Shown in pieces: positions 3,101 to 40,041 of a stretch of DNA of 64,000 nucleotides. Each line of letters opens with the position of its first letter. The stretch's first letter is position 1. The notes under the pieces are model-generated. The model was not told the DNA's origin, did no database searches, and worked only from the letters and a program-made list of their open reading frames with translations. The DNA is from Bugula neritina. Lineage: Eukaryota > Animalia > Bryozoa. The DNA lies in NCBI GenBank assembly GCA_964035545.1, contig OZ037767.1:17109781-17173780 (forward strand), given 5' to 3'. Both the position numbers and the translations under genes were made by a program.

Positions 3101-6100
3101 CTTCATCAGGATGCAGATTGATGGAGCTGTATTGATAAAAACTTTTCTTTTTAGCAGTAGAGGCATCATGAAAAAAAGGTAAGTATTTTACTCAATAAGA
3201 ATGCGGGTTTTTTACTTCTACAAATTTGATAGCCTACACTATTCTATTTAAATGGAGACTGGTCTGACATGTGTCTGCAATTTATTAGTTATAATATAGT
3301 AAATACTATGCGGGCCTATAGATCAAATGGCTCAAAAAAAAATTAAATAAAACATTGCACAACGCTGTATTTATTAGCAATGTGATACTTAGCAACTAAT
3401 TTCACATTATCATTGTTTGCAAAGTTTACATTACATATGTTTGTTCAATTCAGTGTTCTGAAGTAGAAGGTTCCAACAGCAGGGAAAAGCCTTGAACAAG
3501 ATATTATGTTCTACATCTCCAACTCATTTTAACTTTGCTGGTCAGTTCATTGTGTATCTGGAGCATAGTTTTGTATTTTCAAGTAGTCCATCAGATACCT
3601 TTGTAGGTAGTAAAGATTAAAATGTTTGTGCAATGATGTCCATAATGTTGAACTGATTTATTGAAACTAAAACTGTTCTTAATTATAACAAAACTTGACA
3701 ATCTTTACATAAAGAATAATGTCCTATAATCTATCTTCATTGTAAACAAAATTAGAAAGTTCCACATCAGCAAATTGTTTATCATCATCTGTAGGTGGAA
3801 GAAGCTTGCACTCAGTTATAAAGGCAAGCTGACAGTGGTTTTCTTTGCCTTCTATGAAGATTTGGAAAGAGCCAGAAAATTAATACTCTATAACTGCAAA
3901 ACCATGTTGTAGTGTCTTGTGTTATTGATTGAATCATCTAAAAGAAAAATTGTTGTATCATTATAATTTTACTGTTAATGAATAAGCAAATCTACTTATC
4001 TTGGTAAATATATTCAAGAACAAATACTATAGTGTAACTCAGTTTTGGTTATGTGTATGCTCCTTAAGCGAATTTACAGCAGATATCAAACTATATATTA
4101 GAGACTGATATAGGAATTAAATTTAAGCTAACCATGATGATGTAAATAGCTGTTGAATGTGACTTCAAGAACTCTGCTGGCCATGTCAGTTCAAATACAC
4201 CAGGGTGATATGTTACGAATGTCATGTCATTATTGAAATTCAGCTTTTTTAAGTGCCTCTTCACAACTCTGGCAGCATTCTGACTGCTCCTTAGCTTTCT
4301 GCGCCTGAAATTTCTTCTACTTGCACCATTCTTCTATTGGTGGAATGTTAGCCTATAACAAACAGGTGTACCAAAGCTAAAAAATATCTAATTCACTGCA
4401 CTAGGATATTATTCAACTCATTTAAATTTAATATATAGCAGTAAAACAATCACATACTTGTATTTATTTTATCAGCTTTACTTTACAAAGCTGAACCATA
4501 TGATTTAGTAACTTGTCACCATAATAAACATTGTACAACATACAAATTGAAAACCTGATGTGATTGCTTTTTTAATAGAATATACATCACAAACATGTTA
4601 CTTTGATAAGCGTGTTCATAATAAAAGTATTAAACCAGTTTGAAAAAAATTATTTTGTTATGTAATGAATCACAAAACTACATCATTTTAGACCTGTAGC
4701 TCGATGTTCTTCAAGCAACGGGCTGCTATGACTAATTAATTTTTTATCATTGCATTTGATTGTTCTACTCATTGGCGAGTTAAAATTATTGGTAATTTAA
4801 TGTATATTTTAGCTATCTCTGTACAATCAATGTCATAGTAATATCAATTAGGTTTTAAATTTCACTGAGTTTATAGTAAATTATTGCAACTGTTACATAA
4901 CATTTGGCTAATTCTCTAGTTCATTAAATAACCATACGAACTTAATTTTATAACATGACAAAACACACAAAGCAAAATTAAAATAAGCATATTATGAACC
5001 AATGTATTTGATAAGTGATAATGCTGTTGTAAAACATAAATTATCAAATTTAAATAGTTATTATTACTATTAGTATTACTATCATTATAACAACTATAAT
5101 CATTATTACTATTACTATTAGTATTAGCATTAGTAGTAAAATATTAATATGAGTAGAGTTCAACATATACAATCTAGCGTACTATAAAAGTAGAAGTAGA
5201 ACTTCTAAAACTATCATCTGCATCATTAACAGAACTATGAGTAATACTAGTAGTTGTACTAATAGTAATACTAATTATTAATACTAATAGACAATAGTAA
5301 TAGTATCACTATGAGTATGAGACTTGGGCTGGCAGTGATTATCACTATGATAGTGACTATCAGCATCGTCATAGTCAAAAGTTACAAGAATTAGAAGCCA
5401 TATTGATATTCTCATTGAGTTATGCATAGTCATATTCATAGTATTAGTCAATCACTGATTGAGTTAATGTCATAGTGATACTCATACTCATAATTAATTT
5501 ATACGATTACGACACTCATAGTGATAGTCATAGTCATAGTGATAGTGATACTTCTTCGTGAATTTAATAATAATTTAATATTATTATCATTGTTGCTAAT
5601 ATTATCATTTATGTCTTACTCTTAGTCTAACAGCAGCTCTATGAAGAAGTTAAACATAACTGATAAAACAAATTTAAAAAACAATACTGCAACAATCAAT
5701 ATAATGTATATCAATATGCTAGCAACCTAATTTTCAGCTCACTTCATTAACTTTCCGTGCAGTATTGCGATAAAATAAATTTATTAATGGTGACCTTGAC
5801 ATCTTCGTCTAAATGCCTTTCACATCAAGCCCCGAACCAATTTGTAAAAATTTTGGATTTTTTACTTTTAAATATTTTTTACAAAAAGAGCTTCAAAATA
5901 AATTTAAAAAAAAGTGAGCTGTTGTCCACATGAGAGGAAATATATGAGCCAATTTTCTAAATTCTGGAAGTTACCAGAGGGTCACAATATTTTTTTTTAA
6001 AAATCTTTATTTTCACGACAAGCTCTATATATTAATATAGAAAAAAAGAAGACAACTCTTCTTTCAGATTTTTCATGTGCCACGGTCACGTCAATATCAG

Positions 6101-8310
6101 TGCTATTAACACATATATTTTAATTCATTTTTTCTGGTATATTGAGTTGAGATTTTTTTTATATATTTTGTAAATGTAACTAAAAAAGTATGATCTTTCA
6201 ATTAACAGTAATTGATTTTATCAAAATAACCTGGATGCCTACGATGTTTAAGAGAGATGAGAGAGGAACAGGGAAGGAAGAAAAGGAGAAAAGAGGAAGG
6301 AAGAAAAGCGAGAGATAGAAACTAAGCCGGACACCTGAGCAGTTTCACCGGAGAGTTTAATGTTAGGAGTTGTCTCTAGTGTTCCCTTGAAGATATGAGT
6401 CACAGCAACAGCACCAGAGGGCGCTTCACACTTCCACAGCCTCAGGCCAGGTCTAGCAGCGTAAACATACTCGGGGGAGTCGGGACGGGCGTGGAAACAG
6501 CCTCCAAATGTGCCTTGTCTACAGTAACAGAAAAATCTGTCTTAGAAACATTAAATTGATTAGCTCTTCACATGACTTAATACTTGTAAGGCAATGTGTT
6601 GATTGAAGTCTCAACATGAGAAGGCAACTGAAGTAGTGACTCTATTTATATCTTAAAGAGATAACCAATCAGAGCAAAGGAACTGGTCACATGACCAGAG
6701 AATACTCACTGTTTACGAGGTTTAGTGCCGAGTTTAGTGATCTCCCCGGAGCTCAGATGTAGTATAGCAGCAGACAGGGTGGTGGATACCAACAGGAGGG
6801 GAGAACTCAAACTCAGCTGTACCACCGGGTGAGTCTCATTCAACAGCACCGTCTGACTCAACTCAGTCTACAGGAAGTGATGTCATGCAGGAAATGAGTA
6901 CGAGTCATACGAGTGGTTGAGAGTTTAAAAGTGTCTTTTAGTCAAAACAAAAATTCTAAGTCGATATGAAGCTGAATATGTAAAACCCCTGAGAGGGGGA
7001 GTTGAGTGGATGATGCTTCGCAAGTAGCTCTAGACTCACCTTTTTGATCTCTACAGCTGTCACTACTCCACTCTCGTCTCCGACATATACAACACGGTGG
7101 TCAGGTGCAAACTGCAGCGCGGTTATGCACGCATTGCTAACAACTGCAATCTGCAGACAGGATGTAGCCTGAAACATACAGAAATATCAGATAGAAACTC
7201 AAGCATCTTTAGTCAGTTGTAATATAAAACATTTGAATAATTTATCTTTGGGGAATAAACCAGTCTATTCAGTTTCGCTAAGTCTGTATGAAGTAAAGAT
7301 ATACAAGAAATTTTTAAAAAGAACAATTTAGAAAAACATAATAAATAACTTTAGACAATTTCGCTCTCATGTAAGATAATATTATATATATTATTCATCA
7401 TAATGAGAGTAGACAACTCCCACATTCTACAGTAATACTATAAGTATAGGCAACCAGACAGACAGACAGACACACATGATAATAATATAGATCATATAAT
7501 AAAAACCTTAATATAGCTCTCAGGACTGTCAACATGCAGACGTGAGTAGAAGATCTGCCCTGATTGGCTGCCGACTGCCACATGATAATCTCTACCTTCT
7601 GATTGGCTGCCTTTAACGGTATTCTTACTGCCTGATTGGTCACTTTGAGACCTGTCTTTTGATAGGCTGATCTTCGTGAGGTTTTCACTCTTATTCTGAA
7701 CAGAATTTTACACGCTTTAAAAAACGTTGCATTTAAAACATACTTTGATATCAGCAGACAATCATTATAAATAGCTCGTGAACTTACACCACACTTAATT
7801 TTCAGAATGAGGCTGCGTCTTCTCCTGTCAATAATATAGACGACGGCCATATTGCTTCCTACAGCCAGCCAGTCCTCGCAGACGTCCAGAGAAGTTATTA
7901 GAATGTCTTGAGTTCCCAGAGAGATGATTCTCTGACCTGCATTCAATAGCAGACGTCATATGAATGCTCAAACTAGCTGAACTAGTAAACACTCAGTATG
8001 AGTCGAGAAATCAATTTCTTCAATAGACAGGTTTTTTAAAGGGAAATTTTCAACTCGGTTTGAGCCAGGAAACTAGTTTAAAATGCTTCTTCAACTGATA
8101 GGAGAAAATTCAATTTACACAAAATAAAATGTTTAGTGAACTACGAAACCAAATTTTGGGTAAACATACCATTCACCAGCAGTTTAAGGTAACTATATAT
8201 AAATTAGGAGGTCAAAGGGTTAACTGTTCACCTTTGTCAGGAATGAGATAGAGGAGATGAGACAGGGAGTCCCATTCTTTGTAACGGGGAGATGTCTGAG
8301 GGTCATCCAT
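120..8310 (-). CDS. TECPR2: TECPR2-like (TECPR2/HPS5 family) N-terminal WD40 beta-propeller; partial, continues off the left edge
   Basis: Phase-consistent GT-AG exons: 8232-8310 (MDDPQTSPRYKEWDSLSHLLYLIPDK), 7788-7936 (ITSLDVCEDWLAVGSN), 7507-7695 (HVAVGSQSGQIF), 7040-7168 (ITALQFAPDHRVVYVGDESG), 6710-6867 (VVQLSLSSPLLLVST...LGTKPRK), 6335-6518 (GTFGGCF...YAARPGLRLWK), 502-638 (LVSWNDKSILIVD), 120-250 (IIDVACCSGDIFIL). Motifs IPxK, GTxPRK and RPGLRLWK fit TECPR2 better than HPS5. Confidence 0.85.
932..6247. mobile_element. Decayed Kolobok-like DNA transposon (TTAA TSD, short imperfect TIRs) in TECPR2 intron
   Basis: TTAA at 928-931 and 6248-6251; left end aggccgtaagcttccaggttattt vs reverse complement of right end acatcgtaggcatccaggttattt (19/24); sits between GA-rich tracts on both sides (810-910, 6252-6320); internal degenerate exons. 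Confidence 0.6.
3720..4352 (-). pseudogene. Degenerate Cys-rich exons resembling KolX (Kolobok second ORF, related to the P2X7 intracellular ballast domain)
   Basis: Exon-like segments 4133-4352 (EEWCK*KKFQ...ECCQSCEE...FVTYHPGVF...RVLEVTFNSYLHHH, with frameshifts and stops) and ~3720-3893 (YRVLISGSFQIFIEGKENHCQL...), with AG acceptors; loosely follow the WCxC..CC..HPGF..VL..Y..YR pattern. Confidence 0.35.
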
Positions 8311-15290: not shown

Positions 15291-15336
15291 TACCAGCACC
15301 ACCACCACCAGCACCACCAGCACCACCACCAGCACC

Positions 15337-15367
<31 letters not shown>

Positions 15368-15403
15368 GCACCACCACCACCACCACCACCAACACCACCA
15401 CCA
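15291..15403. repeat. (CAC/CAG)n trinucleotide microsatellite
   Basis: accagcaccaccacc... run upstream of GPCR exon 1. Confidence 0.95.
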
Positions 15404-15478: not shown

Positions 15479-18400
15479 ATGTGCTCGTCTCATCGCCTGC
15501 TGCTGCCTTTGCTGACACTCGCTGCCTGCACATCAGCATCAGCAGAGTTTGTAGACGACTGTAGTAGTCCTATCAAGCAGCACGTAACTGTGTCGGCCAT
15601 CTTCAGATATGGAGAGAGTAACTCCAGCATAGAGTTCAGCAAGTACGGATACGCCCACATATACAACACACCATATGCACAAGTCTCAGGTATAATAAGC
15701 CAATTGATTTACACAGAAAAGTGAAATCAATTAAAGGATATAAAATCAATCAAGATTCATTTGAAAAACCTATGTTACTGTGCTGAATGGCTACAGACAA
15801 AATATTATAATCAAATTTTTACATTTAGTTTGATTTAAGCGATGCAGTATTGTATTAATGTATAATACTGTTATATTTTTAATAACTTGTATAATCATAG
15901 CTCTATATATTGCAATATTATATTATATTGTATTATTATATTCAAATCAAAACCTCAATTAACATCGGCAACTTTAAATCCTAATTATATATCGTCTGCT
16001 TCAATTTTGTTTACCCTGCAAATACCTAGATCATTCGATGAATAGCAAAAGATTATCAACAAAATTCCTTACTAATAAATATATAATAGCTTCAGGTTGT
16101 AACAGTGCTGTAGTTTGACCCTTGCATATGTTTATCTGACGTATAATTAGAATTATCTCCTCTTTTTTCAAGGAATCATCCCAGTTTATTAGTGCCGTAT
16201 GCTACTGGAATAAAAATAAGAGTTACCTCCTCTCTTTTTGCAAATCACATGACAGGAGTTTAATTCTTATAATATTTTTATTTTCTCTTTTTCCCAATGC
16301 AATATAATTGAGCAATCAAGCTTTAGTGAAATTGCCTTGAATGACATACAAAATGTGGTAGTGTGAGTTATTTCACTTTTGGTTATTTATGATGTAGTAG
16401 GAGTTATCTCCCTATATATTCTAGTAATTTCTCAAGATCCTAATTTTTCACCCTTTCTAAACTCAGGGCTGGTGAGAATACCCGAGGTGAACAAATATGG
16501 CTGCAGAAATGAGTCATATTCAGCTGACGAGGTGGGGGATTGGATAGCCTTAGTTCAGAGAGGTAACTGCACATTTAGTAGGAAGGGTGAAGTTGCCTTC
16601 TCTCTTGGAGCTCAAGGAATCATAGTCTATGACAATCAGAACAACTCTACCCCTATCCTTATGACTGGACTACCAGGTAAAGGTTTCTATATGTAGTTGA
16701 AAAGTTTGTTACAGTAAATACAATCTTACACAACTTGCACTATGAACACAGGGTTTTGATTCTATAGCTAGCAAAGTTATATGGCAGGTTTCATGTACTG
16801 ATGCAGCAAACAGTAGCAAACTGATACTATTAATAGCTACATTATCTTATAATAGTATTAGTTCCATTACAATAACTAATAGATATATGTGTCTTACAGT
16901 TTTACCTACTAATTGTGTGAAGTGATTCCATTAGCAGCTGTTGCAGGTATAAATATATACGAATAAATAGATTGATATTTACAGTGAAATTATTATATAC
17001 ACATTTGATCTGTAAAAATTGTATTCTATTATTTTATAAAATCTTTACTGCATTTCTGTGCAATACATTTAAATTCTAGTGTTATTATATACACTGTATA
17101 TTATTGTATATTACATTGCAATGTTAATGTAATTAGCGTATATAATTATTGTATTACTATGTTATATATAATATATTTGCATACACATTACATTATGTCA
17201 TTTTATACATATTGCAAAGCGATATTATGTAATTGCATTCAAATTAAACTACAGTTAGATAACTTATTCCATATACATATTACACTATATTATATTATTG
17301 TATGCATATCACTGTAATATTTACTACACTGTATATTACTGTATTACGCTGCCAATGTAGATGGGCTGCCAGCAGTATTTCTACCTCGGGATGTTGGAGA
17401 TAATCTCACCCAGTCAATACAGACCAATAAGATGGCAGCATTTGCTACACTCTCTGAGATGGTGGAAGATCCAGTTACTCGTTATAAAGGTATCTATGTT
17501 TATAAACTAACATTGAAGTTAGTTTGGTTGCCATAGAGATGAACTCTCGCAGCAATAAAGTGTGAAGAAACTAAAATGCCCAGTTGCAGCGGCAAAAAAA
17601 CTAATACTTTGGTATGACATAAGAAGATGAATGTTTAACACTTGGGCTATGAAGTTCATTCCAGAACTTTCTCAAAGTGTGTTCACCGGTTAGGAAGTCA
17701 AATGAGTGTCAATTAGCTATATAACAAACTTGATGAAATATTTTATATTTTAGATCCTTCCAATGTTGTGATGCCTATCACGGCCAGCATCATGTGTCCG
17801 GCAGCCATCATACTCAACATCATCTCTCTCCTCGCCATGTACAAGTACACTGGGAAAGAGAAGCCACACCTGTATCTTATAGGAAACCTCATTCTCACAG
17901 ACCTCCTAGTAGCCATTGTAAGCTCAATATCTATACTGGTGAGTCATGGTTTATTAGTAGTCATATATATATATATATATTATTTGGTGCATCTTGTGCA
18001 TTGAAACCTCAACTTAAATTATTTTTCAGATCAATTACACCTGCATTTTAGTATTCATTCGTCTAACATTCATTTAGATGTTGTTCAAACATGCTCTGAT
18101 TAAATTAATTATTTTATACACAGAAACGCCAGTACTTATGTACTAACTACATGATGTACAGTCATACTTTTATACTTATAGATCTATTTATAGTATTCAA
18201 GTGTGTAGATACATTATTTTCTATTGTTGTTACACCTTATACGATATATATGCTATTATAGCTTATAGAACGCATTATATTCAAAATACCATTAGAAAGT
18301 TTTGCATATAAAAATTAGAATCTGTTTTATAGTTAAGAATGTAGGATTACAATCTTGCAATTTTGTAAGTAAAATAGCAAACATAAATATAATTTGGCAT

Positions 18401-21400
18401 TGCAATATATTATTTCTATATATGTAATATAGTATATTAATGCTACATAAAAATGCAATCTAACGTATCATTGCTATATTATATCAAAATGATATATAAA
18501 ACCTGTATTAAAATTCATTGTATCAAAACATAAATAGTATAGTTCGTGATATTTAACAACAGTTATTTCAAATGACAATTTGAACACCTATGTTTGTAAC
18601 GTAACATACGGATAATAGTGTCAGTAGGTGAAACGCACAGTATTTACAACTTGGGGAATAGCAGTTGTACAGTTCAATATATTTATACTGGTGTTACTAT
18701 AAATAGCAGCAGACGGAGGGGTCAGGTGAGGTCAGCAGTATCCCCCAGAGTGTTATCTGCAGATTATACAATTACAGCTGTATATAATTATATTGCTGCA
18801 GTTGAGTGTTGTTCTATTCTATACTATGTTATATAATGTGTTCTATTCTATACTATGTTATATACTGTAGTCTATTCTATACTATGTTATATAATGTAAT
18901 CTATTCTATACTATGTTATATAATGTGTTCTATTCTATACTATGTTATATACTGTAATCTATTCTATACTATGTTATATATTGTAGTTTATTCTATGCTA
19001 TTTTATATACTGTAATCTATTCTATACTATGTTATATAATGCAATCTATTCTATGCTATGTTATATAATGTAGTCTATTCTATACTATGTTATATAATGC
19101 AGTCTATTCTATACTATGTTATATAATGTAATCTATTCTATACTATGTTATATACTGTAGTCTATTCTATACTATGTTATATAATGTGTTCTATTCTATA
19201 CTATGTTATATAATGTGTTCTATTCTATACTATGTTATATACTGTAGTCTATTCTATACTATGTTATATACTGTAATCTATTCTATACTATGTTATATAC
19301 TGTAATCTATGCTATACTATGTTATATATTGTAGTCTATTCTATGCTATTTTATATACTGTAATCTATTCTATACTATGTTATATAATGCAATCTATTCT
19401 ATGCTATGTTATATAATGTAGTCTATTCTATACTATGTTATATAATGCAGTCTATTCTATACTATGTTATATACTGTAGTCTATTCTATACTTTATCCCG
19501 ACAGTCTCTACACGACAGGAAGTAGCCGTTAGCTGCTCATCATCTCTTCTATGAACTTCCTGTGTTCTCGTTTCTCCTGTAGGGCTTTCCACCTTGAAGT
19601 TACCATCTCCTTCTTCTTGTGGTATTCCACTCTGAAAATTTTACAATAATATTTTCAATACTGTTAAATATTGACTTTATCTTACATTTGGTTTTCTAAA
19701 AAAATTTCGTTTCAAAATTGATCAGTTGTTGACAAACAATCATTAAAAAGTAACATTTTATGCTGGTATTAGTGGTGACCTAACCACAGTGTACCAGATG
19801 CATGTCGTATCAGTACAATAGTATAATACATACATTATACTATTATATACTGATATATATTAGTATAATATAGCAGTAATAGTACTATTATAATGTATGT
19901 ATTCTATAATCACAACGACTAACCTCCAGGTTTCATGTTCTTCCAGAACTTTCTCTATCAACTGTTTTTTGATCTCCACCTCTTCATCCAATGACCTCTC
20001 ACGTTCTTCTTCCTCTGCAGTCATTATGTTCCACTCTGAGTCACCATCTTGAGAATTGTCATCATTGTTTACAGCAATCTCATTGGTCAACTGATTGCTA
20101 TCTGTATTGTCATTCGCTAATTTACTTTCATCTGTATTTGAATTGGATGTTTCGTTTATATTAGCTGGGCTGTCTTCAGCCATTTTTTAGAATTTGTGCT
20201 CTTCAATATTTCTCAGTTTTCCTTCAAATGTTGCTGCAGATATTTTCTACAATACAAACTTACTGCAGATATTCTCTACAATACAAACTTACTGCAGATA
20301 TCCTCAGTTATGTCCTGCCTCTGTTGGCATAACAAGTAGAATATAATATTTTTACCTGCTTTTGTTTCCCTCAGGCTATGAAAACATTTTATTAGTTTAT
20401 GACGTTTGAGTTTAAATTTCTAAAAATAGTGACGCATGTCTATGCAATTAGCACTACTGTTCACACAGTTGCAATACATTGCTGGACAAAGTAAAGCACT
20501 GTTATACAATATAATATAATGTTATATAATATGATTGTAATACCTCTAGCTATATTCCATATACTATGTAATCATTTTACCTATTTTAATAATTGGTATA
20601 ATTCAGGCTTATTAAATACAAATATTAGTACTTTCCATTAATCCAGCTAACCTATATACACATTTTAACATAATTAGCTGCGTTAATGTAAAGTATAACA
20701 CTATAAAATTAGCACAATGTGTTACAAACATGTTATATAACACAGCAACCTACCTTTTCTACTCAGCTTACTGTATTTCTACCTTAACTCATCTAGATTT
20801 AGTATTTAATACCCTCCACAACACACACTGAATAAATAAGCTAGTCTCTCTGAATTATTTTAATATTAAACACCTCCTTTGTTAGGAGTAATTGAGCCGT
20901 TGGTTAGCACAGTTCTCATTGTATACTCATTCTGTAATTTAATAGCTACAATTATTCTCACCTCTTCAAGCATGAAATTTCACCCTGACACTGCACTGCA
21001 GGTGTTTCACACTTACATCGTCTGCTAGTTAGCTTCAGTTCCATGTACTACTTTTCCTGCAATGTCGGGTGGGGATGCACTAGTACCAGACTGCTTATTG
21101 AACCTTAGTCTTAATTGCAAAGCAGACTCCATAGTAGCTTTAAAACCAATATATATGTTGAAGCTGTAAACCAGAGAAACATTATTATGGAACAAAGGCT
21201 AAAAGTTGAGTAACACAAAGTAAATAGTAATTCAAAACTAATTTATAAAAACAACAAAAAAGATTCAATTTCCATGATGTGACATTTCTGTGTCATATGA
21301 ATGAAACTGAGAGAAATGTTTATCAAGTAAATGCAGATGAATATCTTAGTTCTAGGAAACATACAATTAGAATACTAAAGTAAGTACAGTATTAAGTGTA

Positions 21401-23460
21401 GATGTATCTATAGGAAGTATAGTGAGAATACTAAAGTAACTAAAGTAAGTACAGTAAGTACACTTGTTTAAGTGGATTAACATTGCTATAGATAAAGTTG
21501 TCTCCTTTCCTACAAGGGGAAATAAATTGATATTTTCTATAGCAAGGTGCAACTTGTCTTTATTTCACCATGCTGCATAAAATGACACAATAAACATCAT
21601 ACTAATAAAAGTATTGTCGGTAGTTGATTTAGAAGTTATCTTCTTGTTGACCTACATTCCATTGCATCTATACTCATAGTTGCTTAGGTTATTATAGAAT
21701 ATTAAGTAAGAGGTCCAATATGTTGATACTACACCACCTATGAGTGATATTTCCCTGCTTTGATCATTCTCTTGTCTTGACTACCAGACGGAGTAATATA
21801 TGGAGATGCTTGCTAAAGGAAATTGTAGACTTCTAGATTTTAGTTGCTATTTCAGTCTGAGTGGTTTGATTGAGATTGAATTTGACATTCTAGCTGCAGT
21901 TGAATACATAATCATTTTTTTAAGTTATTAATGTTAAAGTTGGGATCGAAGGTTATATAGAATTTTATTCATGTTGTTAAAACTGTTTCAGAAACTAATA
22001 TTTGTGCATCTATTATTAAAAAGCTATTATAAAATCAGATATACAGTTTTAGAGCTCAACATTTTCTACAAATTTCAGAGTAAAGAAATGCGTTTACAAA
22101 ACCATTAGTTTTGGATTGAGATTACACTTTTTATTTGTATATTTAAATTGTTTATTTATTGTTTGTTTATTTATTTATTGTTTATAGTAATAAATATTTA
22201 CATTTTTAGCTCATTTATCCCCAATACGATAACTTTACTAAAAAGACGATGTTCACTCAAGTATATCTACCATGTATTAACTACACACTCGCTGAATTAT
22301 GGGATATGCTTATGTACTCCAATTTATTCACTCTGCTATTTTTAGCCTTGGAGCATTACATAGGTGAGAAAGATCTTTATAATTGGTATATTTTTGATTT
22401 ACATGTTACTACAGCAGACATGAGTTTGTCTAGTTGTTGCTATGACAGCACTATAGTTGTTTACTTGTTGCTATGAAAGCCATAAGGTCGCTTGTTGCTA
22501 TGGTAGCAATTAAGGTTGTTTACTTGTTGCTAGACTAACTTAATTTACTTGATTTGTTCACTATAATCATACTGCTGAAAAGCTAGAATATATTCAGTTT
22601 AATTGTTGCTATGACAACAGTATGCCTACTTTGAACGTAACTATGGCAACATAGCAATACATTTTGCGAATAGGTTGCCATAACTTCTAGCACTTTCAAA
22701 GTTACTTTAACATCAAAATTTATGTTTTATTTGCATTACTGCCTATATTTCAGCGTTCAAATGGCCTTTCAAGCACAAAGTCCTGGTGACCAAGAAGCGT
22801 GTGTGGATTGTCATAGCCATTTCCTGGATGTTATCAGCTGCTCCAGCAGTCTACTTCCTTATCAAAGACTTTACCTTCAGCTCAGTAGAGTCCAGCTGTT
22901 ACGAAGAGAAAGGATTTTGTTGGAAGAGGTACTACGATATGTTTGTAAATCAGACATATGCCTGGGAAAAGTCCTTGTACTGGGTCATAGTTGTGTCTAC
23001 AGTCTTCGTGTCTATGATCTTGGTCTATGGCTACATACTCATCATTGTTCATAAAGTGAAGAAACGCAATAGAGGTTTCCGGAAGCATTATACAGCCTTA
23101 GTAACGGCATTATGTCTTGTTGCTTCTTTCTTTGTGTCGTACATTTTCTATTACGTCATCCATGTTGATGCAGCCATCTACAAGGGCTACAACACAGCGC
23201 TACAGAACGCCATCCATATTCAACTAAAGAAGTTTTGTCCTGCGTGCACATTGATACTAGACTATTTGTTGACAGGAACTTTGGGTGCCATACTTGACCC
23301 AATTATTTACTGCGTAAGAACAAAGGAAGTTAAGGGAGTGCTTAATCGGTTCTTCAAAACTAAGATATTTTTGCGTCGGCCATCAGTTACATCCTCTACA
23401 GGTTACGTGAGAGGAGCTCAGATCAGCACGACAGACGAGGTTGCAGATGAGCACGTCTGA
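15479..23460 (+). CDS. Class A (rhodopsin-like) GPCR with signal peptide and N-terminal PA (protease-associated) domain, ~531 aa
   Basis: Exons 15479-15689, 16467-16676, 17361-17489, 17754-17938, 22210-22363, 22754-23460 (1596 nt; intron phases 1,1,1,0,1 all compatible, all GT-AG). Signal peptide LLLPLLTLAACTSASA; PA motif WIALVQRGNCTFSRKGEVAFSLGAQGIIVYDN...LPAVFL; TM1 AIILNIISLL; TM2 IGNLILTDLL; TM3 C...LFTLLFLALEHYIA; TM4 IAISW; TM5 ILVYGYIL; TM7 ILDPIIY. Confidence 0.85.
18812..19492. repeat. 28-29-bp minisatellite (tctattctatactatgttatatactgtag)
   Basis: Tandem units in GPCR intron 4, just 3' of the nested gene. Confidence 0.95.
19529..20183 (-). CDS. Nested antisense gene: ~120-aa protein with an acidic N/D/S-rich N-terminus and charged helical/coiled-coil C-terminus; unknown family
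   Basis: Exon 19924-20183 (MAEDSPANINE...EEVEIKKQLIEKVLEEHETW) with donor ag|gttagt; exon 19529-19631 after ttttcag continues in frame (RVEYHKKKEMVTSRWKALQEKREHRKFIEEMMSS*). Confidence 0.7.
22405..22684. promoter_or_regulatory. Cluster of RFX X-box-like motifs in GPCR intron 5
   Basis: GTTGCTATGACAGC 22436, GTTGCTATGAAAGC 22467, GTTGCTATGGTAGC 22494, GTTGCTAGACTAAC 22526, GTTGCTATGACAAC 22605, GTAACTATGGCAAC 22637, GTTGCCATAAC 22674. Confidence 0.4.
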
Positions 23461-25068: not shown

Positions 25069-27451
25069 CTACTCCTGGATACCTACAGATAGATATGTAA
25101 ATTATTATATATACACATTGTACACTATATATACTATACACTGCATATACTATACACTATATATACTATACACTGCATATACTATACACTGCATATACTA
25201 TACACTGTATATACTATACACTATATATACTATACACTGTATATACTACACACTATATATACTATACACTATATATACTATACACTGTACATACTATACA
25301 CTGTATATACTATATACTGCATATACTATGTACTGTATATACTATATACTGTATATACTACTATGTATACACTGTATATACTATATACTGTATATACTAC
25401 TATGTATACACTGTATATACTATACACTGTATACAGTATATACTACTATTTATACATACTACTATGTATACAGTACACAGCACACACAACATAAGAGTAG
25501 TATATACTATACAGTGTACACAGCACACATAACATAAGAGTAGTATATACTACACACTGTACACAGCACACACAACATAAGAGTAGTATATACTACACAC
25601 TGTACACAGCACACACAACATAAGAGTAGTATATACTACACACTGTACACAGCACACATAACATAAGAGTAGTATATATTATACACTGTACACAGCACAC
25701 ACAACATAAGAGTAGTATATACTATACACTGTACACAGCACACATAACATAAGAGTAGTATATACTATACACTGTACACAGCACACACAACATAAGAGTA
25801 GTATATACTATACACTGTACACAGCACACACAACATAAGAGTAGTATATATTATACACTGTACACAGCACACACAACATAAGAGTAGTATATATAATTAC
25901 CAACAGCCCCTTCTCCTTCATCCTCAGTTTGATCTAACCCATTAGCCTTTATTTCTCTCTCCCATGACCTTGATTCGACCTTCTTTAGCTTGAGCACCAC
26001 TTTGCCCTCTTTCCACTGCATATACAAACATATAAATCTGTAATCACACTAACAGAGTACAACAAGATGCTTCTAGCTTCGTCAATTCTAAAGAAACATG
26101 AGTAGCTTGAATAGAATAGACTATAGAGTATGATGTAGGGGAGTTCATGACTCATTGACATGACATCATCCCTCTAGCAGACGGCTGACAGGTCAAGGGC
26201 ACTGTTTATATTAACAAGTCAGTAGAAAGTGAATCACACACTATGGCAGAGTATATACAGTTTCTCTGATGTCACCAGTGTCATGTCTATTCCCAACTTT
26301 GGCACTTGATGAGAAAATGAAACTGCAAATCATTTTGTAAAGGTCAATCAATAGCTTTCCTTTATGCAATAGTTAAAGTTAAACTAAACATGATTTTGTT
26401 CAAAGTTAGTCTCTTTCTCTTTACTTAAATTTGATTACAAGTTTCCAACAGAGGTTTCAACTCAATTGGCACATTGAGTGGCTAGTGGGTAAGTAGAGGG
26501 TGGCTAAAGGCTAACTAGGGGTGTAGCTATGGGTGTAGTTAGGGGGGTAGCTAGGGGAAGGCTAGGGGTGTAACTAGGGGAGAAGGCTAGGGGTGTAGCT
26601 AGGGGGAAGGCTAGGGGTGTAGCTAAGTGTATAGCTAGGGGTGTAGCTAGGGGGAAGGCTAAAGCAACTGTACCTTGATTTTGGAGTCGTCAGGTAGGAT
26701 ATCTCCAGGCAGCTGCTTCACTTCGTACACATACTTGACTGTCTTCTTACTCTTTGATTTACATTCTACGTGGAAGCTGAGGGACCTAACAATCAACACA
26801 GGGCTTTGGTTATACTCAGTAACTAGTTGGGAGTTACGTTCTCCCGGACAGTTTAGAGCTGGCATAGTCCTTCACCTTGATACCACGTAGCTAAAGTTCC
26901 TTAAGTTACCCTAGCAGTAATTCTAGCGACTGGGAGAATTCAACACATGCGAGTATAAAAACTCAAACTGAAAAACGGCAAACAAAGGAGTGTGGAACCA
27001 AATAGCCAGACCTGTTCTCAAACCGATGGTCAAAGTTGCCTACAGCTGGTTTGTCTGTAAACTTGCCACCACTAAGTGACTTCTTCACTTTCAGCTCTGG
27101 AATGACGCAGATGACTTCACACCAGCCTTCTGGTTGCTCGTCGTTGGTGGTTACTACAGAATACACCTGGTATATAATACACCTGGTATATAATACACCT
27201 GTTATATAATACACCTGTTATATAATACACCTGGCATATAATACACCTGGTATATAGTACACCTGATATATAGTACACCTGGTATATAATACACTTAGTA
27301 TATAATACACCTGGTATATAATACACCTGGTATATAATACACCTGGCATATAATACACCTGGTATATAGTACACCTGGTATATAATACACCTGGTATAGT
27401 AACGGACTCACTCCCTAAAGGGCCTCGAGAGGATTGGTCCCCAGAACTCAT
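25069..27451 (-). CDS. Small CS/p23 (HSP20-like chaperone fold) domain protein, ~147 aa
   Basis: Exons 27391-27451, 27012-27153, 26674-26785, 25901-26015, 25069-25082 (444 nt, phases compatible). FENRSLSFHVEC...YVYEVKQLPGDILPDDSKIKWKEGKVVLKLKKVESRSW fits the CS-domain pattern L..I.P..S..K...KV...LKK....W, followed by an acidic tail. Confidence 0.75.
25105..25893. repeat. Compound intronic repeat: tatactatacactg-type tract (25105-25470) then a 43-bp minisatellite x10 (25474-25893)
   Basis: tacacagcacacacaacataagagtagtatatactacacactg at 25474+43n. Confidence 0.95.
26475..26662 (+). repeat. G-rich short tandem repeat (gctaggggtgta / gctaggggaag), G-quadruplex-prone
   Basis: More than 10 GGG/GGGG runs spaced by short loops, in an intron of the CS gene. 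Confidence 0.8.
27161..27398 (-). repeat. 16-bp minisatellite (ataccag|gtgtattat on minus), ~15 copies, forming nearly all of the first coding intron of the CS gene
   Basis: ctggtatataatacac units; each contains the exon/intron junction sequence. Confidence 0.95.
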
Positions 27452-30076: not shown

Positions 30077-31985
30077 CCCTACTTATAGCTATAGTAATAC
30101 TAATACTCTAATAGTAATACTACTACTAATAGTATAAATACATTACATTCACTATTACTATTAGTATTAGTATTACTATGAGTATGAGTATTAGTACAAC
30201 TATAACTATAAGATTAATCATCAAGTATAAGTATAACTCTAAGTGCATAAGAATAACTATACGTTTAAGTCTAACTATAACTATAAGTATAAGTATTAGA
30301 TTTAATATAACTATAAATATAAATATAACATTACCCGTATAACTATAAGACTAAGTTAATATTAATACTATTATATATTAATATACTATTAGTATTAATA
30401 TTAATATAATAATAATATCAATATGTTATTGTTAATATTATATTTATTATACTTGAACAGTTGAAGTCAAGAGTTTGAACAAAATAAAAGTTTTAGTAGC
30501 AATACTATTATTATAACTTCTACTCCAAGTCTAAAACTAGAACTAAAAGTAGAGCCTAAATCAAAATAAAATACTCCAATTGTAGTAATTTAGGCCTACC
30601 ACAGAAATGAAATAAATAAAATAATCATAATGATATAAACAATATTATTTCATTTTCGGGCAATTATTAATGAAGAATCGCTAGAAGCAGTACAAAGTTG
30701 GGGCTCATTGAGTGCAGTGTTTGTATAGACTATAGAGTATGGTATTGTTGCTCCGAACTCCACGCTTGATACCTCGAAACCACTGCTTTCAACAACCACT
30801 AACTTTGTGCTGCTTCAAGCAATTTTGTTACTAGTGATTGCGGAAATCGACAACTAGCGCTTCTTAGCAGCAAATGAAAAGAGTTTGTAGGCGTCTAGTG
30901 CACTACTCACAGCCTCATTAAGTATTTCTACGACACTAACGCTATTTGCTCGAGTCTAATATATTCAAATAATGAAAAATATGAGCTCTATTTTCAAATA
31001 CCCCACGCCAAATGGTTACATACTTTGGAGATACTCGTCAGTAAACTGACTAGTCATTACTTTCAGCATTTTCAAAGAAATTTAGATAGATCAACATATC
31101 TTATTTTACAATGGAACTACAAAATAACAATGCTAATTTTATGATTACATTTGAACCATATTTATTTTTAAGTTTTTATTTGCCAAATAATAACCTCAAG
31201 TCTATTAAAAATAAAGCATGCTCATACTCATAGTATAACTATAAGTATGACTATGAGTATCACTATCAGTCATAGTCATAGTAACTGTAACTGTAAGTCA
31301 TACTGATATTCAGTGATACCCATAGTGATAGTCATACTGATACTCATACTCACAGTGATAGTGAATCACTGAAACTGAACAGTGAATGACTGAATGTAAT
31401 ACTTATACTGATAGTGATAGTGCCAGTGGTAGTGTAACCCTAATTGTACTGCTAGTTATACTTATAATTAATAAATTATTATTATTTAAATATTTTATTA
31501 TAATTAAATTATTAATAAATTATATTGATTTGCTTTTAGAACCCGGCAGTTTAATTTATTTTTAATCATAATTAAATTTAATATTTGACCTGTTGATACC
31601 CGTCTGTCTGTCGATGTTATCTCCACAATGAACCTCCCTATAGCAGAGGGAAAGAGGGGTTTGTCACATATAGAAAATAAGTTGTCAGTACAGGTACTTG
31701 GGCAGTAGTCCAAACAATGTTAACATTCTTGTGCAGATTAACTTAACAGGCTAACTCAAACTGGCTAACTAACTTGTTAATTCAATAATTGACAAAATGA
31801 CATCAGTTTCAGAAGAATAAATAACAAAATTAAATAATTATCAAAAATTTAGCTAAATTTAGACTAAATAACTGGTTGAACTTCGCAAATATTTGTAAAT
31901 TTACTTTATTTTTATTTTTGGTTTTCAGTTGCGGAAGTTACATTCTCAAGTTCAACCCAGTCCCAGGATCAAAAGATTTTTGAAA

Positions 31986-34900
31986 ATGGATAAAATATTT
32001 TGTGGGCTAATGGAGGCGGACAATCTCAATGCTGAACACAAACTGAAAGTGATACACATGTTGAAACATAGTGGCACTCTACCACATGATAGCAGTGAAG
32101 TAAAGCGAGTGCTTACTGCATCTCTTTCATACTGGTTGCATAGCAAAACTTCAACTGAAAATGTAGAACTCTCATCTGTTGTATTTAAAGCATGGGCTTG
32201 CAAACGAGTCGTGTTGCTAATTGAGGTTGTCACAGAAGAACTGACTAAGATCTCCAATGCTTCCATCTTTCCACTTTCAGTGACGCAATTTAGCAATCTC
32301 TTAAAATTTGTGTTACACTCCCTAGACATTCAAGAAGTCCGCACAGACGCCGTGGAAACTGATTTGCCTGTAAAATCTGTGCAACAGACTGTATCACTGA
32401 TTGCTCTAGTTTCAAATACAGTTCTACCATTGGTGATGTCTTATTGTCAGGAGTTGTCTGATCTCGCCAATTTGTCGATCACTCTTTTGGAAAACTCTGT
32501 TTTACTGCAACAAGGCGGTGCTGCATTAGCTTGCAGTCTAGTGGAACGACTGAGTGTATTAAGGCCAACAGTAGGGGGCGATCCTAAACACTTCATACAA
32601 AACTCTCTTACAGTTAGTAGACTTGTGAAGGTTCTTTGGTCGAAATCCTCAACACCCAAACAACTCATCTTGCAGTCACTTCAAACCCTGTTTCGTATTG
32701 TCGCGACCAATGAGAATGCTGAAAACGTCTCTGTCTCTCTCAGCACTATATTACAGTTGGTGCCAGAGGTTTGTGTGAGCTTATATACTAGTGTGCATAT
32801 TATTATACTCGTTGCTGTTGACTCAGTCCGATTTGATTTCCACTCTTTGTAGTCTATGATTGATGATGTGTGTAAGAATCTACTCAGCGACACTAGTGTC
32901 AAGGATAATCAGATCACCAATGCCTTGCGTCACATGATCACATGGTTACAGTGGCCTAAACACGTCAACCTTCACCTCTGGATAATCAGGCTATGTTTGT
33001 CAGTTATCTTCTCTTTGTTCTCCTGGAATTTTATGTTTATATGTATGTTTGGTAGCGCATGGAATGAACTCATGTTCGGTGCTTCCTTTACTGTAGCGGT
33101 CTCGCAGAAACTGGCCGACTCATCATCCTGTTTGAGATAACCAATGAGATGGCGGCCACTGTTGCTCAGAAACTCTGGTACAGAAACATTCAGTCAACTG
33201 TGTTACAAGTCCTCATCACTCTGCTGCTGTTCAACCAGAGCTGCCCGGTGGCTTTCCACGGCATCATTCCTATTCTAGTAAGAATGTTTCTGTTGGTACA
33301 TGCTTCATAGAACCAGATGTTCTACATCCACTGGGTTCTTTAACTGGTGTTCACGAGGTTTGGACCTTCAGCTGATCTTCTTAATTGCAGGTAAAGGCAT
33401 TCGATGAGGTGGAGGAAGTGGATATAAAGGAGGAGTTGTCTAGGCTGGTGCAGACACTGATATACATGCACCCCGGTTACCCTGAGCTCTACCACCCCCT
33501 GTCTACACTCCTGGCTGACTATGATGTGCTCTCTGAAACATGTATGCAGGAGATGGTCAAGAAGTACTCCGTCTCTGTGTATAACAGTAAGTATTCTATA
33601 TATAATAGTAAGTATTCTATATATAACAGTAAGTATTCTGTATATAATAGTAAGTATTCTATATATAATAGTAAGTATTCTATATATAGTAGTAAGTATT
33701 CTATATATAATAGTAAGTATTCTATATATAACAGTAAGTATTCTATATATAATAGTAAGTATTCTATATATAATAGTAAGTATTCTATATATAATAGTAA
33801 GTATTCTATATATAGTAGTAAGTATTCTATATATAATAGTAGGTATTCTATATATAATAGTAAGTATTCTATATATAATAGTAAGTATTCTATATATAAT
33901 AGTAAGTATTCTATATATAACAGTAAGTATTCTATATATAATAGTAAGTATTCTATATATAATAGTAAGTATTCTATATATAATAGTAAGTATACTATAT
34001 ATTATAGTAAGTTTTCTATATATAACAGTAAGTATTCTATATATAATAGTAAGTATTCTATATATAATAGTAAGTATTCTATATATAATAGTAAGTATTC
34101 TATATATAACAGTAAGTATTCTATATATAACAGTAAGTTTTCTATATATAACAGTAAGTATTCTATATATAATAGTAAGTATTCTATATGTAACAGTAAG
34201 TATTCTATATATAATAGTAAGTATTCTATATATAATAGTAAGTATTCTATATATAACAGTAAGTATTCTATATATAATAGTAAGTATTCTATATATAATA
34301 GTAAGTATTCTATATATAATAGTAAGTATTCTATATATAGTAGTAAGTATTCTATATATAATAGTAAGTATTCTATATATAATAGTAAGTATTCTATATA
34401 TAATAGTAAGTATTCTATATATAGTAGTAAGTATTCTATATATAATAGTAAGTATTCTATATATAATAGTAAGTATTCTATATATAATAGTAAGTATTCT
34501 ATATGTAACAGTAAGTATTCTATATATAATAGTAAGTATTCTATATATAATAGTAAGTATTCTATATGTAACAGTAAGTATTCTATATATAATAGTAAGT
34601 ATTCTATATATAATAGTAAGTATTCTATATATAATAGTAAGTATTCTATATATAATAGTAAGTATTCTATATATAATAGTAAGTATTCTATATATAGTAG
34701 TAAGTATTCTATATATAATAGTAAGTATTCTATATATAATAGTAAGTATTCTATATATAACAGTAAGTATTCTATATATAACAGTAAATATTCTATATAT
34801 AATAGTAAGTATTATATATATAATAGTAAATATTCTGTATATAACAGTAAGTATTCTATATATAATAGTAAGTATTCTATATATAATAGTAAGTATTCTA

Positions 34901-36739
34901 TATATAGGTGTAAGAATAAGTGTATTTAGAGTAAGTACTCTGTATATATGAGTGAGTATAATTAGAGTAAGTACAGTCAAAGTAAGTACCAGAATAAACA
35001 TTAATTGCTATTTTCATAGGATCAAAGAAATTTGCTGCGTTTGCCTCTCAAAGCAAAGTTGAAAAAAGGGTGGATAAAGTAGGACTGGAGAACCTGGGGA
35101 ACACGTGTTTTCTCAATTCAGTGGTGCAAGCTCTCTACAACATAGACAGTTTCCAGACGGCCATCTTGTCTTCCGAGATGAGTTCTACTCCGCTCCTGCG
35201 AGGGTTGCAGACGGTGTTTGCATTTCTGCAGCTCACTCAAAGGTATATTACCTCTTTAGTCACAGTAACAGCCGTAGATCTTCTCTATAGTCACAGTAAC
35301 AGCTGCAGATATTCTCTTTCGTCCAGTAACAGCTGTAAATTTCCTATTTAGACACAGTAGCTGCTGTAGATATTCTCTTTAGACACAGTAACAGCTGTAG
35401 AAGCTACATTCAAAGTTGTCTTCTCACTCTTGTAGAGCCTCCCTCAGTCCCCATAGCTTTGTGAAGGCCAGTTTGCCGAGCTGGTTTGTGGAGGGGGAGC
35501 AGCAGGACAGCAGTGAATATATGAGATTCCTATTGGACAGCATCCACGAGGAGACGGAGAAGGTGAACAGACAACTCCCAACTCAGTCTGAACAGACACT
35601 ACTAGGTGAGAGTAACTTACACAGTTGGTAATCAGTTTCCTTCCTCTTGACACCAGAGAGCTGTCCGAATTGGCTTTCTTACTTTGTCAGCATTTCTCTT
35701 GTAAAATTTAGTTTCTGCAGTTTACACTTTATGCTAGCACATGCACTTATATTATCTTTAGAATACACTTGCTGAATATTTAGTATAGCATCTCTATCAA
35801 GTATTTGCCTCTTGGATTTTTGTAGTCTTATAGAATAAACCTATCTTTGTGTTAAGAAGATTCAACTCTAGTTTGTGTTGAGAGGATGAAGTAAACCTCA
35901 AACTCTCTATTTATGTGGCCTCAGGTTCTTTGATTTACCTGCAGATTACACTCTGAGTTTCACGGGGAGTGACACGGTCACTACGAGGTGTGAGAAGTGT
36001 TCCGCTACAAGCTCATCTCACCAGAAGTTCTATGACATCTCTCTGCACTTTGACGAGGAAAGCAGCAACACAGACGCCCTTGACCTCACTGACATGCTCT
36101 GCAAGGCTTTCAAGGACGAGAACCTGGTGGGAGACAACCAGTTCTACTGTAACTCTTGCGGTGAGATAAGCTGCACATATCACCTCTCTCTCTCTCTCTC
36201 TCTCTCTCTTGTAGCTACAGATATCACCTCTCTCTTGTATCTGCAGATATCACCTCTCTTTTGTAGCTGCAGATATCACCTCTCTCTCTTGTATCTGCAG
36301 ATATCACCTCTCTCTTGTATCTGCAGATATCACCTCTCTCTTGTATCTGCAGATATCACCTCTCTCTTGTATCTGTATATATCACCTCTCTCTCGTAGCT
36401 GCAGATATCACCTCTCTCTCTCTTGTATCTGCAGATATCACCTCTCTCTTGTAGCCGGGTTACAAGATGCCACCAGGAGTCTGTCTGGCTTCTCTCTGCC
36501 GTCCTGTCTGGTGCTGACTCTGTGTAGATTCTCATACAACGTCAAACTCAACAAACACATAAAGATACGGGCACCCGTGCAGTACCCCTCTAACCTGGAA
36601 ATACTCAACAAGAAATACATGCTAAACGCAGTCATCGTACACTCCGGGACCTCCCTGAACGGCGGCCATTACTATACGTATGCTCGTAGCTTGTCTTCAT
36701 CATCCGGCCAGTGGTAAGTCTTCTTATATAAATATATTA

Positions 36740-38194: not shown

Positions 38195-40041
38195 TATTGT
38201 CAGTAAATACGTTATGCTATGCTATGCTATGCTATGCAGAAGCATTGACCAGTCCACAGTCAAGAGAATGGCTAACTGCAGCACAAGCTGAATACGACTT
38301 TTTGGTTGAGAACAATACATGGGAGCTTGTTCCTTTAGCCTAGGGCCACACGGTGCGTATTTTCACATGCGAAAATTGAAATCACAAGTAGCAAAGGTGT
38401 CCAAAGGTGTCCATTGACTGCAAATGGGTATTTAGATCTAAATACGACACAGACGGAAACATTGAGCTCTACAAAGGTCGACTAGTAGCTCGAGGGTGCA
38501 CACAACAAGCTGGTGTCCACTATGACAAAACGTAAGCGCCAGTAGTCAAGTATCCATTGTTAAAAGCCTTGCTAGCTTATGCTCTCTGCAACAACATATG
38601 TACATTCATCAAATGGATGTGATAACCGCTTTTTCAAAATGGACATCTAAGTGAAGAGATATATAGGCTATGCCACAACCAGAGGGTTTCGTGAAACAGG
38701 GAAAAGAGAAACTAGTGTGTAAACTCAATAAGTCAATCTATGGCCTCAAGCAATCACCCAGGTGTTGGAATGCTGTTCTAGATAATTTTCTGAAATCAGA
38801 AGATTTACTCAGTCATCTGCTGACCAGTGCTTATATGTAAAGTTCGTCAAAAATGTAAAAACCATTGTTGCTATTTATGTAGATGATCTTGTGATTATGT
38901 CCAACACTGAGTCGGCTCTGCTTCAGGTTAAACAAAGACTAGCCAATAGATTTGCAATGAAATACTTGGGTAAACTACACTTCCTTCTTGGTATGTCAAT
39001 AGAGCATGGAGGAAACTTTCTAAAGATAAGTCACCAGGCCTTCATCAAACAAATGCTCACAAAGTTTGAAATGGAAAACTGTAATTCAGTATCTTCACCT
39101 GCAGCTATGGATGTAAAGCTGGTCAAATCAGATGAAAGCAAACCAGTTGATCAAAAACTGTACCAGTCAATCGTAGGCAGTCTACTATACCTTGCAGTTG
39201 CAACCCGACCTGACATTGCCTATACAGTGGGAGTCCTCTTTAAGTTCAATTCCTGCCCCACTGTAACACACCTTACTGCAGCTAAACATGTTTTGCGATA
39301 TTTGAAAGGTTCTGGTGATGTTGGACTGAGTTACAGAAAACATAATGGAACACTAATTGGATATTCAGATGCTAGTTGGGCAGATAATAGTGATGATCGG
39401 TACTCAACAACTGGGGTAGTATTCTCGTATGCAGACAATCTTATCACATGGTTGCCCTCTCAACTGCTGAGTCAGAATACATCTCATTGTTTGAAGCTAC
39501 AAAAGAAGCGGTCTGGTTAAGACAACTCCTAACAGATTAATAGATAGTCCAATCTCGGACGCAACTGTTATTAATGTAAACAATCAATCTGCCGCAGCCA
39601 TTGCTAACAATAACAAAAGCACCAAGCGTATCAAGCACATGGACAATAAATACCACTATGTTAGGAAGGCTGTTGACTCAAAAACTGAAGCAACAAACTT
39701 TTGTCCAATTAAGTGAGATAATGCTGGCAGACCTGTTGACAAAGCCAATGCCTAAAACTAGATTTTTCCAACTCAGTAAACACTTTTATATAATTTAGAT
39801 TTGATGTGGACCAAGTGGGAGTGTTGTCCGTAAATATGTTTATAGCCACACATTGAATCAGTTGATGTTATTTCAATGTGCTTTTGTATCCTAGCTTGTG
39901 CCTATTGTACTTATCTGCTTATCTGTAATAGCAATCTTATAGCTATCCACTTATGTGTGCTACTTTATGTTTTTTGTTCTTCTTTTACTTGCTTGTAATA
40001 TTCAGTGCAATAAAGAGCTCTGTCAAATTATAACTCTAACA
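38195..40041 (+). mobile_element. Internally deleted Ty1/Copia LTR retrotransposon (RT-RNase H, PPT, 3' LTR)
   Basis: YAEAL..W..A...E..NNTWELVP, CKWVF, KGRLVARG, IHQMDV, KSIYGLKQSPRCWN, YVDDL, GYSDASWAD..STTG with frameshifts and stops; PPT aagtgggag then LTR TGTTG(39822)...TAACA(40041) containing AATAAA; 5' LTR stub tattgtcagtaaatacg at 38195; flanks agagg/agaga. Confidence 0.9.

Follow-up and report, generated by a model that had tools for sequence, protein, structure and literature searches.

A predicted class A receptor with a protease-associated ectodomain in the genome of the bryozoan Bugula neritina

A gene of six exons in a 64,000-nucleotide stretch of the Bugula neritina genome (GenBank assembly GCA_964035545.1, contig OZ037767.1, positions 17,109,781 to 17,173,780 of the forward strand; below, the window, to which all positions refer unless another contig is named) very probably encodes, as a single protein, a class A (rhodopsin-type) seven-transmembrane (7TM) receptor with a protease-associated (PA) ectodomain. 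The union of a PA domain with a class A 7TM core is a genuine, uncharacterised domain combination. The initial annotation knew of no characterised receptor of this kind, and the literature yielded no description either: full-text searches pairing PA or protease-associated with GPCR (G-protein-coupled receptor), 7tm_1 or the Pfam accessions found no such receptor, although automatic annotations may list it, and two surveys of GPCR domain architectures leave PA plus class A 7TM unmentioned in their text.

Structure of the gene and its predicted product

Six exons with canonical splice sites and compatible phases had been proposed to give one open reading frame (ORF) of 531 amino acids (aa), with all three introns in and beside the PA region in phase 1, and our rebuild bears this out in all particulars (Table 1). 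Re-reading of the window sequence shows that all acceptors are AG and all donors GT; the spliced ORF has 1,596 nt, that is, 531 codons plus a terminal TGA, with zero internal stops, and the intron phases obtained by script are 1, 1, 1, 0 and 1. An in-frame TAA lies two codons 5' of the receptor ATG. The gene is single-copy in this genome, where its PA exon and its terminal exon each occur once. Within 17490-17560, at the start of intron 3, read-through meets a stop seven codons on, with an AATAAA at 17554; retention of this intron may conceivably yield a secreted PA-only isoform of ~190 aa.

Database, family and fold searches were run exon by exon, and the joined 531-aa model was used for frame checks and local pairwise alignment. 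Both profiles named in advance by the initial annotation, PF02225 and PF00001, score above their gathering thresholds: exon 2 alone matches PA at 48.9 bits (E 7.1e-13; cut-off 23.9), and exon 6 alone matches 7tm_1 positions 89-260 at 40.7 bits (E 2.5e-10; cut-off 30.5). Exon 4 alone matches 7tm_1 positions 2-37 with an E-value of 0.02. Hydropathy reveals an N-terminal signal segment and then helices beyond residue 186, and the spacing from the last PA strand to the first transmembrane helix (TM1) is only ~18 residues. Six N-glycosylation sequons fall in the predicted ectodomain and further ones in the predicted outer loops. The protein is predicted, from its sequence and from the P0005 model described below, to have seven helices and a helix 8 with its N-terminus outside. 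The proposed succession of signal peptide, PA domain and class A 7TM core in one protein therefore agrees with Pfam, with hydropathy and with three relatives of the same architecture.

Between the PA domain and TM1 the frame is open, as had been claimed, and neither a separate transmembrane segment nor a RING domain intervenes; the RING-H2 pattern is found in none of the six frames of window 10-31 kb, and a Pfam domain search found no RING domain in the relative P0005 (see below). A plan like that of PRADC1, in which a signal peptide and a PA domain are followed by a stop, is not recognized, as the spliced frame runs on into TM1 and P0005 has no stop there. The ectodomain exons match no Pfam family besides PA above the cut-off, and thus contain no recognizable leucine-rich repeat (LRR) or LDLa module.

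Relatives in protein databases

Exon 6 was scored exhaustively against 1.84 billion cluster representatives, of which nine proteins were found at an E-value of 0.001 and five at 1e-10. Because so exhaustive a search gave only these five relatives, the family is small and lineage-restricted. Four of them (P0001-P0004), with 38-48% identity, come from genomic or metagenomic contigs on which the frame of the last exon is open. The fifth relative, P0005 (501 aa, 30% identical), is matched in Pfam by both domains, 7tm_1 at 44.6 bits over the full length and PA at 31.5-33.9 bits, and is coded by a single uninterrupted ORF with short flanks on the 1,698-nt Logan contig L003. Local pairwise alignment of the spliced model with P0005 is collinear over 461 aa, from the PA strands through the linker and TM1 to helix 8 (E 1e-55). 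Because this 461-residue alignment runs collinearly from PA through TM7 along an uninterrupted ORF, the predicted six-exon splice model lies far beyond chance. When P0005 was searched back against this genome, the best matches were exon 6 and the PA exon of the locus described here.

In word-indexed searches, neither P0005 (whole, or its PA region) nor a C-terminal family profile retrieved anything besides P0004 and P0005, from an index that seems too coarse for the family. Feature and shape searches of the ESM Atlas led only to clusters of GPCRs or of PA proteins of a generic kind, and to no cluster combining PA with 7tm_1. Three family alignments (A2, A3 and A5) were used below; A1, A4 and A6, with misplaced rows for short exons, were set aside.

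Orthologous loci and a nested antisense gene

The same gene is present in two further genomes. A 9.5-kb scaffold (L005/L006) from a sample labelled BRYA16-1 contains six GT-AG exons (Table 1), totalling 1,578 nt, which encode a stop-free product of 525 aa that is 40% identical to the window model. Its five introns occupy the same alignment columns, in the same phases, as those of the window gene, and the phase-1 intron in the '..VSG' codon that ends exon 1 is common to both. Its PA exon scores 39.6 bits with Pfam PA. A candidate reading in which L005 had lost the second half of its PA domain was rejected on finding the phase 1-1 exon at 3125-3235. In a third species, a 19.9-kb contig (L018), which is present in JGI and Logan assemblies too, carries in order a PA exon (40 bits, E 4.4e-10), a phase 1-1 exon 3 (3338-3457), a TM1-2 exon, a TM3 exon and a split last exon. 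The counterparts of exon 4 (TM1-2) in L005 and L018 are 44-49% identical to it. The split in the third species is due to an extra intron between TM4 and the second extracellular loop (ECL2), seen in L018 (8618-8737/10133-10705) and L007 (2073-2222/3618-4172) and absent from the window and L005.

Within intron 4, antisense to the receptor, lies a two-exon gene for an acidic, coiled-coil-like protein of 120 aa without any Pfam match. The same antisense gene is found in the same intron of L005 (4296-3964) and L018 (5035-4473), and because two other species share it the nesting is ancient. As a synteny marker common to all three genomes it also shows the compared loci to be orthologous. Minus-strand coding pieces downstream of the receptor are likewise shared by the window (25929-27154, minus strand) and L005 (6891-7470), a neighbouring gene in microsynteny. 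Judged by this gene order, the loci in the window, L005 and L018 are truly orthologous, and the junction between PA and TM1 is old and conserved. The species that carry the fusion are now only 27-40% identical to one another in this protein, and the fusion is old because it predates their divergence; it is confined to a small, apparently bryozoan-centred lineage.

Affinity of the PA domain

The PA core contains RGNCTF, which matches the RGxCxF ligand-binding loop of PA domains. The corresponding residues are RGICTF in L005, RGVCTF in L018 and RGNCRI in P0005, where Ile replaces Phe. The conserved Cys pair is kept as well, 'GC' and 'RG.C' showing no variation among the window, L005 and P0005 and both occurring in L018 also. 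In Arabidopsis VSR1, the RGxCxF loop cradles the last residues of the cargo, and its Arg forms a salt bridge with the C-terminal carboxylate (PMC8740768).

The initial annotation assigned the domain to the Goliath/RNF130 type and ascribed the receptor to exon shuffling, and each proposal stands in part. Of the solved structures, RNF128/GRAIL (PDB 3icu) alone can be aligned with the entire P0005 ectodomain (126 residues). It is a Goliath/GRAIL-type PA and the closest animal solved structure; the alignment includes the N-terminal GVYG...AG...P element, whose window counterpart spans the exon 1/2 junction. The 69-residue PA core, however, searched alone or as a three-species profile, scores highest with bacterial M28/S8 peptidase PA domains, then with RNF128 and then with the transferrin receptor, and ZNRF3 and RNF43 are absent among the matches of these core searches against solved structures. 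A 'Goliath-type' label is thus a reasonable and moderately supported reading of these similarities, short of proof. As for shuffling, the phase-1 introns would fit such an origin, but this genome offers no donor-like PA gene: its other PA matches number seven at ~6 loci, the nearest 38% identical over 34 residues, and no intron positions shared with these other PA genes are evident. On these comparisons the genome contains no recent donor.

The seven-helix core

AlphaFold, run on P0005 with alignment A2, gives seven long helices and a helix 8 at a predicted local distance difference test (pLDDT) of 70-90. Against the PDB, the top Foldseek neighbours of this core are the adenosine A2A/A2B and melanocortin MC1/3/4/5 receptors (TM-score ~0.65-0.74 by target), followed by the beta-1 adrenergic receptor, GPR119, the serotonin 5-HT1 receptor and CB1. 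Sequence matches to solved receptors are weak, with 13-19% identity to the melanocortin/adenosine type, and among named sequences outside the family 'adrenocorticotropic hormone receptor-like' and 'GPR52-like' come nearest.

The window, L005 and P0005 all keep N1.50, D2.50, C3.25, E3.49, W4.50 and D/NPxxY, the last as DPIIY in the window and L005 and as NPIIY in P0005. Arg3.50 is absent, the motif being E-H-Y in the window, E-H-F in L005 and L018 and E-Q-F in P0005. Moreover, in the window, L005 and P0005, TM5 contains no Pro, Pro5.50 included, and TM6 has no CWxP, S-Y-I-F being aligned there. A conserved RRxS / Ser-Thr cluster marks the tail, the last residue of which is hydrophobic; both features would fit a regulated surface receptor.

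Proposed mechanism and alternatives

We picture the product as a class A 7TM protein of type I orientation, the whole extracellular N-terminus of which would be a PA domain with predicted glycosylation, ~18 residues above TM1. The position, glycosylation and retained loop of this domain suggest that it is the ligand-capturing module, probably for a peptide or a protein; the RGxCxF loop is the sole direct hint of such sensing. The free C-terminus of the ligand might be bound by the Arg of the loop, as in plant sorting receptors, and occupancy might be passed to the helical bundle directly beneath. By descent the bundle would belong to the melanocortin/adenosine-like branch within class A. With E-H-Y in place of DRY, and neither Pro5.50 nor CWxP, the receptor may have an atypical output. 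Tentatively, it is possible, if doubtful, that a Goliath-type PA domain atop the bundle reads the free C-terminus of a secreted ligand through the RGxCxF Arg, and that these proteins, with bundles devoid of Arg3.50, Pro5.50 and CWxP, make up a lineage-specific (bryozoan) class of sensory or developmental receptors with an activation logic of their own. To our knowledge, plant sorting receptors are as yet the only proteins in which recognition of a free C-terminus in this way has been demonstrated.

Several observations weigh against this picture or parts of it. RGxCxF is a general PA motif, found in bacterial peptidase PA domains too, and is no proof of C-terminus binding. The PA part of the AlphaFold model of P0005 has the expected strands and helices at a pLDDT of only 35-60, from a shallow alignment, and so poor a model would leave the placement of the PA domain over the helical bundle unfixed. 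The loss of Arg3.50, Pro5.50 and CWxP would weaken the assumption of canonical G-protein coupling, not that of fold membership. At the level of the gene, the exon 3-exon 4 junction in this genome appears to be supported by comparison alone. The source run of L003 (SRR17902662) is either RNA or DNA; the PA and 7TM parts form one reading frame on that contig, irrespective of an origin in RNA or in a gene without introns. In L018 (900-1460), the signal-peptide ATG and the next PA strand are in different frames, and exon 1 resisted reconstruction in a single frame; the cause could be a small additional intron, an indel introduced by the assembly or damage to the first exon.

It is also conceivable, but in our view unlikely, that the fusion is real and does not signal, a degenerate 7TM part serving as an anchor or trafficking scaffold for a PA domain that sorts, scavenges or sequesters as a decoy in the secretory or endosomal system, in the manner of PA-TM-RING or VSR/RMR proteins. 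The replacement of Arg3.50 in the window, L005, P0005 and L018 alike, and S-Y-I-F in place of CWxP beside a TM5 devoid of Pro5.50, speak for this reading, and membrane PA proteins that have been studied in depth, for example plant VSR/RMR, act in cargo sorting and not in signalling (PMC8740768). Set against this are the conservation of Asn1.50, Asp2.50, Glu3.49, Trp4.50 and D/NPxxY, the retention of Tyr5.58 in the window and L005 (His in P0005), the predicted helix 8 with conserved Ser/Thr clusters in the tail that are typical of regulated GPCRs, and the fact that the structural neighbours found by Foldseek are active-state Gs-coupled receptors.

That there are two transcription units or isoforms, with exons 1-3 giving a secreted, PRADC1-like PA protein, exons 4-6 giving a receptor nearly without an N-terminus from a Met at the beginning of TM1, and the fusion a minor product or not made, seems quite improbable to us. 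Read-through of the exon 3 donor does meet a stop after seven codons near an AATAAA, exon 4 does offer an in-frame ATG where TM1 begins, and the window junctions rest on comparison rather than on transcripts. Yet the ORF of P0005 runs without a break through both the PA and the 7TM part, two further genomes share the linker exon as well as the phase-1 junction that precedes TM1, the 264 nt between exons 3 and 4 leave little space for a terminator and a promoter, and AATAAA is expected by chance in an intron of 34% GC. A decaying pseudogene or a chance string of exon-like pieces is scarcely credible, given 1,596 nt without a stop or frameshift, splice sites that are all canonical, an orthologue at 40% identity in which every exon is open, and conserved motifs along the full length. 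The single gene for a PA-ectodomain receptor thus remains our preferred reading.

Other features of the window

The coordinates of the receptor exons and of the other features are given in Table 1. An (ACC)n microsatellite ends 76 nt upstream of the receptor start codon and is probably in the 5' untranslated region or the promoter of the gene. Intron 4 contains a tandem repeat with a 29-bp unit, and a second 29-bp repeat with a different unit lies further downstream. The three family-10 fucosyltransferase genes form a cluster, and each is split into N- and C-terminal ORFs (Pfam Glyco_tran_10_N and Glyco_transf_10; E down to 8e-51).

Table 1. Features of the window, and exons of the orthologous gene on scaffold L005 (ICL, intracellular loop; ECL, extracellular loop)
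Feature	Position	Strand	Remarks
(ACC)n microsatellite	15292-15403		~112 bp
Receptor exon 1	15479..15689	+	ATG, signal peptide (~aa 1-22), first PA-fold strands; ends in phase 1 within Gly codon
Receptor exon 2	16467..16676	+	PA core; phase 1 to phase 1; PF02225 E 7.1e-13
RGNCTF loop	16559..16576	+	Matches RGxCxF ligand-binding loop of PA domains
Receptor exon 3	17361..17489	+	Final PA strands, ~18-aa linker; phase 1 to phase 1
Receptor exon 4	17754..17938	+	TM1, ICL1, TM2, Asn1.50, Asp2.50; phase 1 to phase 0
29-bp tandem repeat	18813-19492		~23 copies, 91% matching; within intron 4
Nested two-exon gene	19924-20183 and 19529-19631	-	120 aa; in intron 4, antisense to receptor
Second 29-bp repeat	20234-20305		2.5 copies; different unit
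Receptor exon 5	22210..22363	+	ECL1, TM3, Cys3.25; E-H-Y (22351-22359) replaces D/E-R-Y
Receptor exon 6	22754..23460	+	ICL2, TM4-TM7, DPIIY (23296-23310), helix 8, Ser/Thr-rich tail, stop
USP38-like deubiquitinase exons	31929-36714	+	Usp38-like_N, UCH
Retroelement fragments	38891-39517 and 61087-62640		RVT_2; RVT_1 + zf-RVT
Family-10 fucosyltransferase gene	43820-46033	+	
Family-10 fucosyltransferase gene	50132-52103	-	
Family-10 fucosyltransferase gene	55905-57847	-	
L005 receptor exons (six, GT-AG)	2308-2521, 2708-2917, 3125-3235, 3321-3508, 5224-5377, 5615-6315		On scaffold L005

Comparison with known systems

Class A GPCRs with folded ectodomains are rare, and it is the LGR, relaxin and glycoprotein-hormone types that have taught how an outer module activates the bundle. 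A PA domain on a 7TM core is a new natural experiment, which joins 7TM signalling with a module familiar from peptidases, sorting receptors and E3 ligases, and which offers a defined, putative binding loop (RGNCTF) together with an unusual bundle without three canonical switches. On this reading, domain shuffling still gives rise to new kinds of receptor in a phylum that has received little study, although a narrow spread among taxa and a function predicted only from sequence limit the reach of the finding.

The Goliath/GRAIL PA-TM-RING ligases (RNF128, RNF130 and RNF13) have the same order of signal peptide, N-terminal luminal or extracellular PA domain and membrane span. However, they have one transmembrane segment and a cytosolic RING-H2 domain, and because the present gene has seven helices and no RING-H2 in or near it, its product cannot be a Goliath-type ubiquitin ligase. 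Plant VSR/RMR proteins are likewise membrane-anchored PA proteins with RGxCxF, like RGNCTF of the window, but they are single-pass, without a 7TM core, and the sequence similarity is weak (VSR1, E 0.02-0.1).

Among receptors, those for melanocortin and adenosine (MECA-like, alpha-group) are the best structural neighbours of the 7TM core. Melanocortin receptors, like the window protein, have DPxxY and no Pro5.50. The melanocortin/adenosine receptors nevertheless have DRY, CWxP and short N-termini, whereas in this family a PA ectodomain precedes a bundle that reads E-H/Q-Y/F and lacks CWxP. In LGR4-6 and the glycoprotein-hormone and relaxin receptors, a rhodopsin-type 7TM core likewise bears an independent protein-binding N-terminal domain on separate exons, and by analogy the working principle is likely to be the same, capture by the ectodomain being followed by activation of the bundle. 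These LGR-type receptors use LRR (and LDLa) plus a hinge, in contrast to the PA domain and ~18 residues here, and the present 7TM core is unrelated to the LGR branch in the Foldseek comparison. Vertebrate ZNRF3/RNF43, R-spondin and LGR4/5 reportedly bring a PA ectodomain together with a class A 7TM receptor in one ligand-bridged complex. The parallel is one of analogy only, the 7TM core here not being LGR-like: there the two modules belong to separate proteins, whereas in Bugula they are predicted to be parts of one polypeptide.

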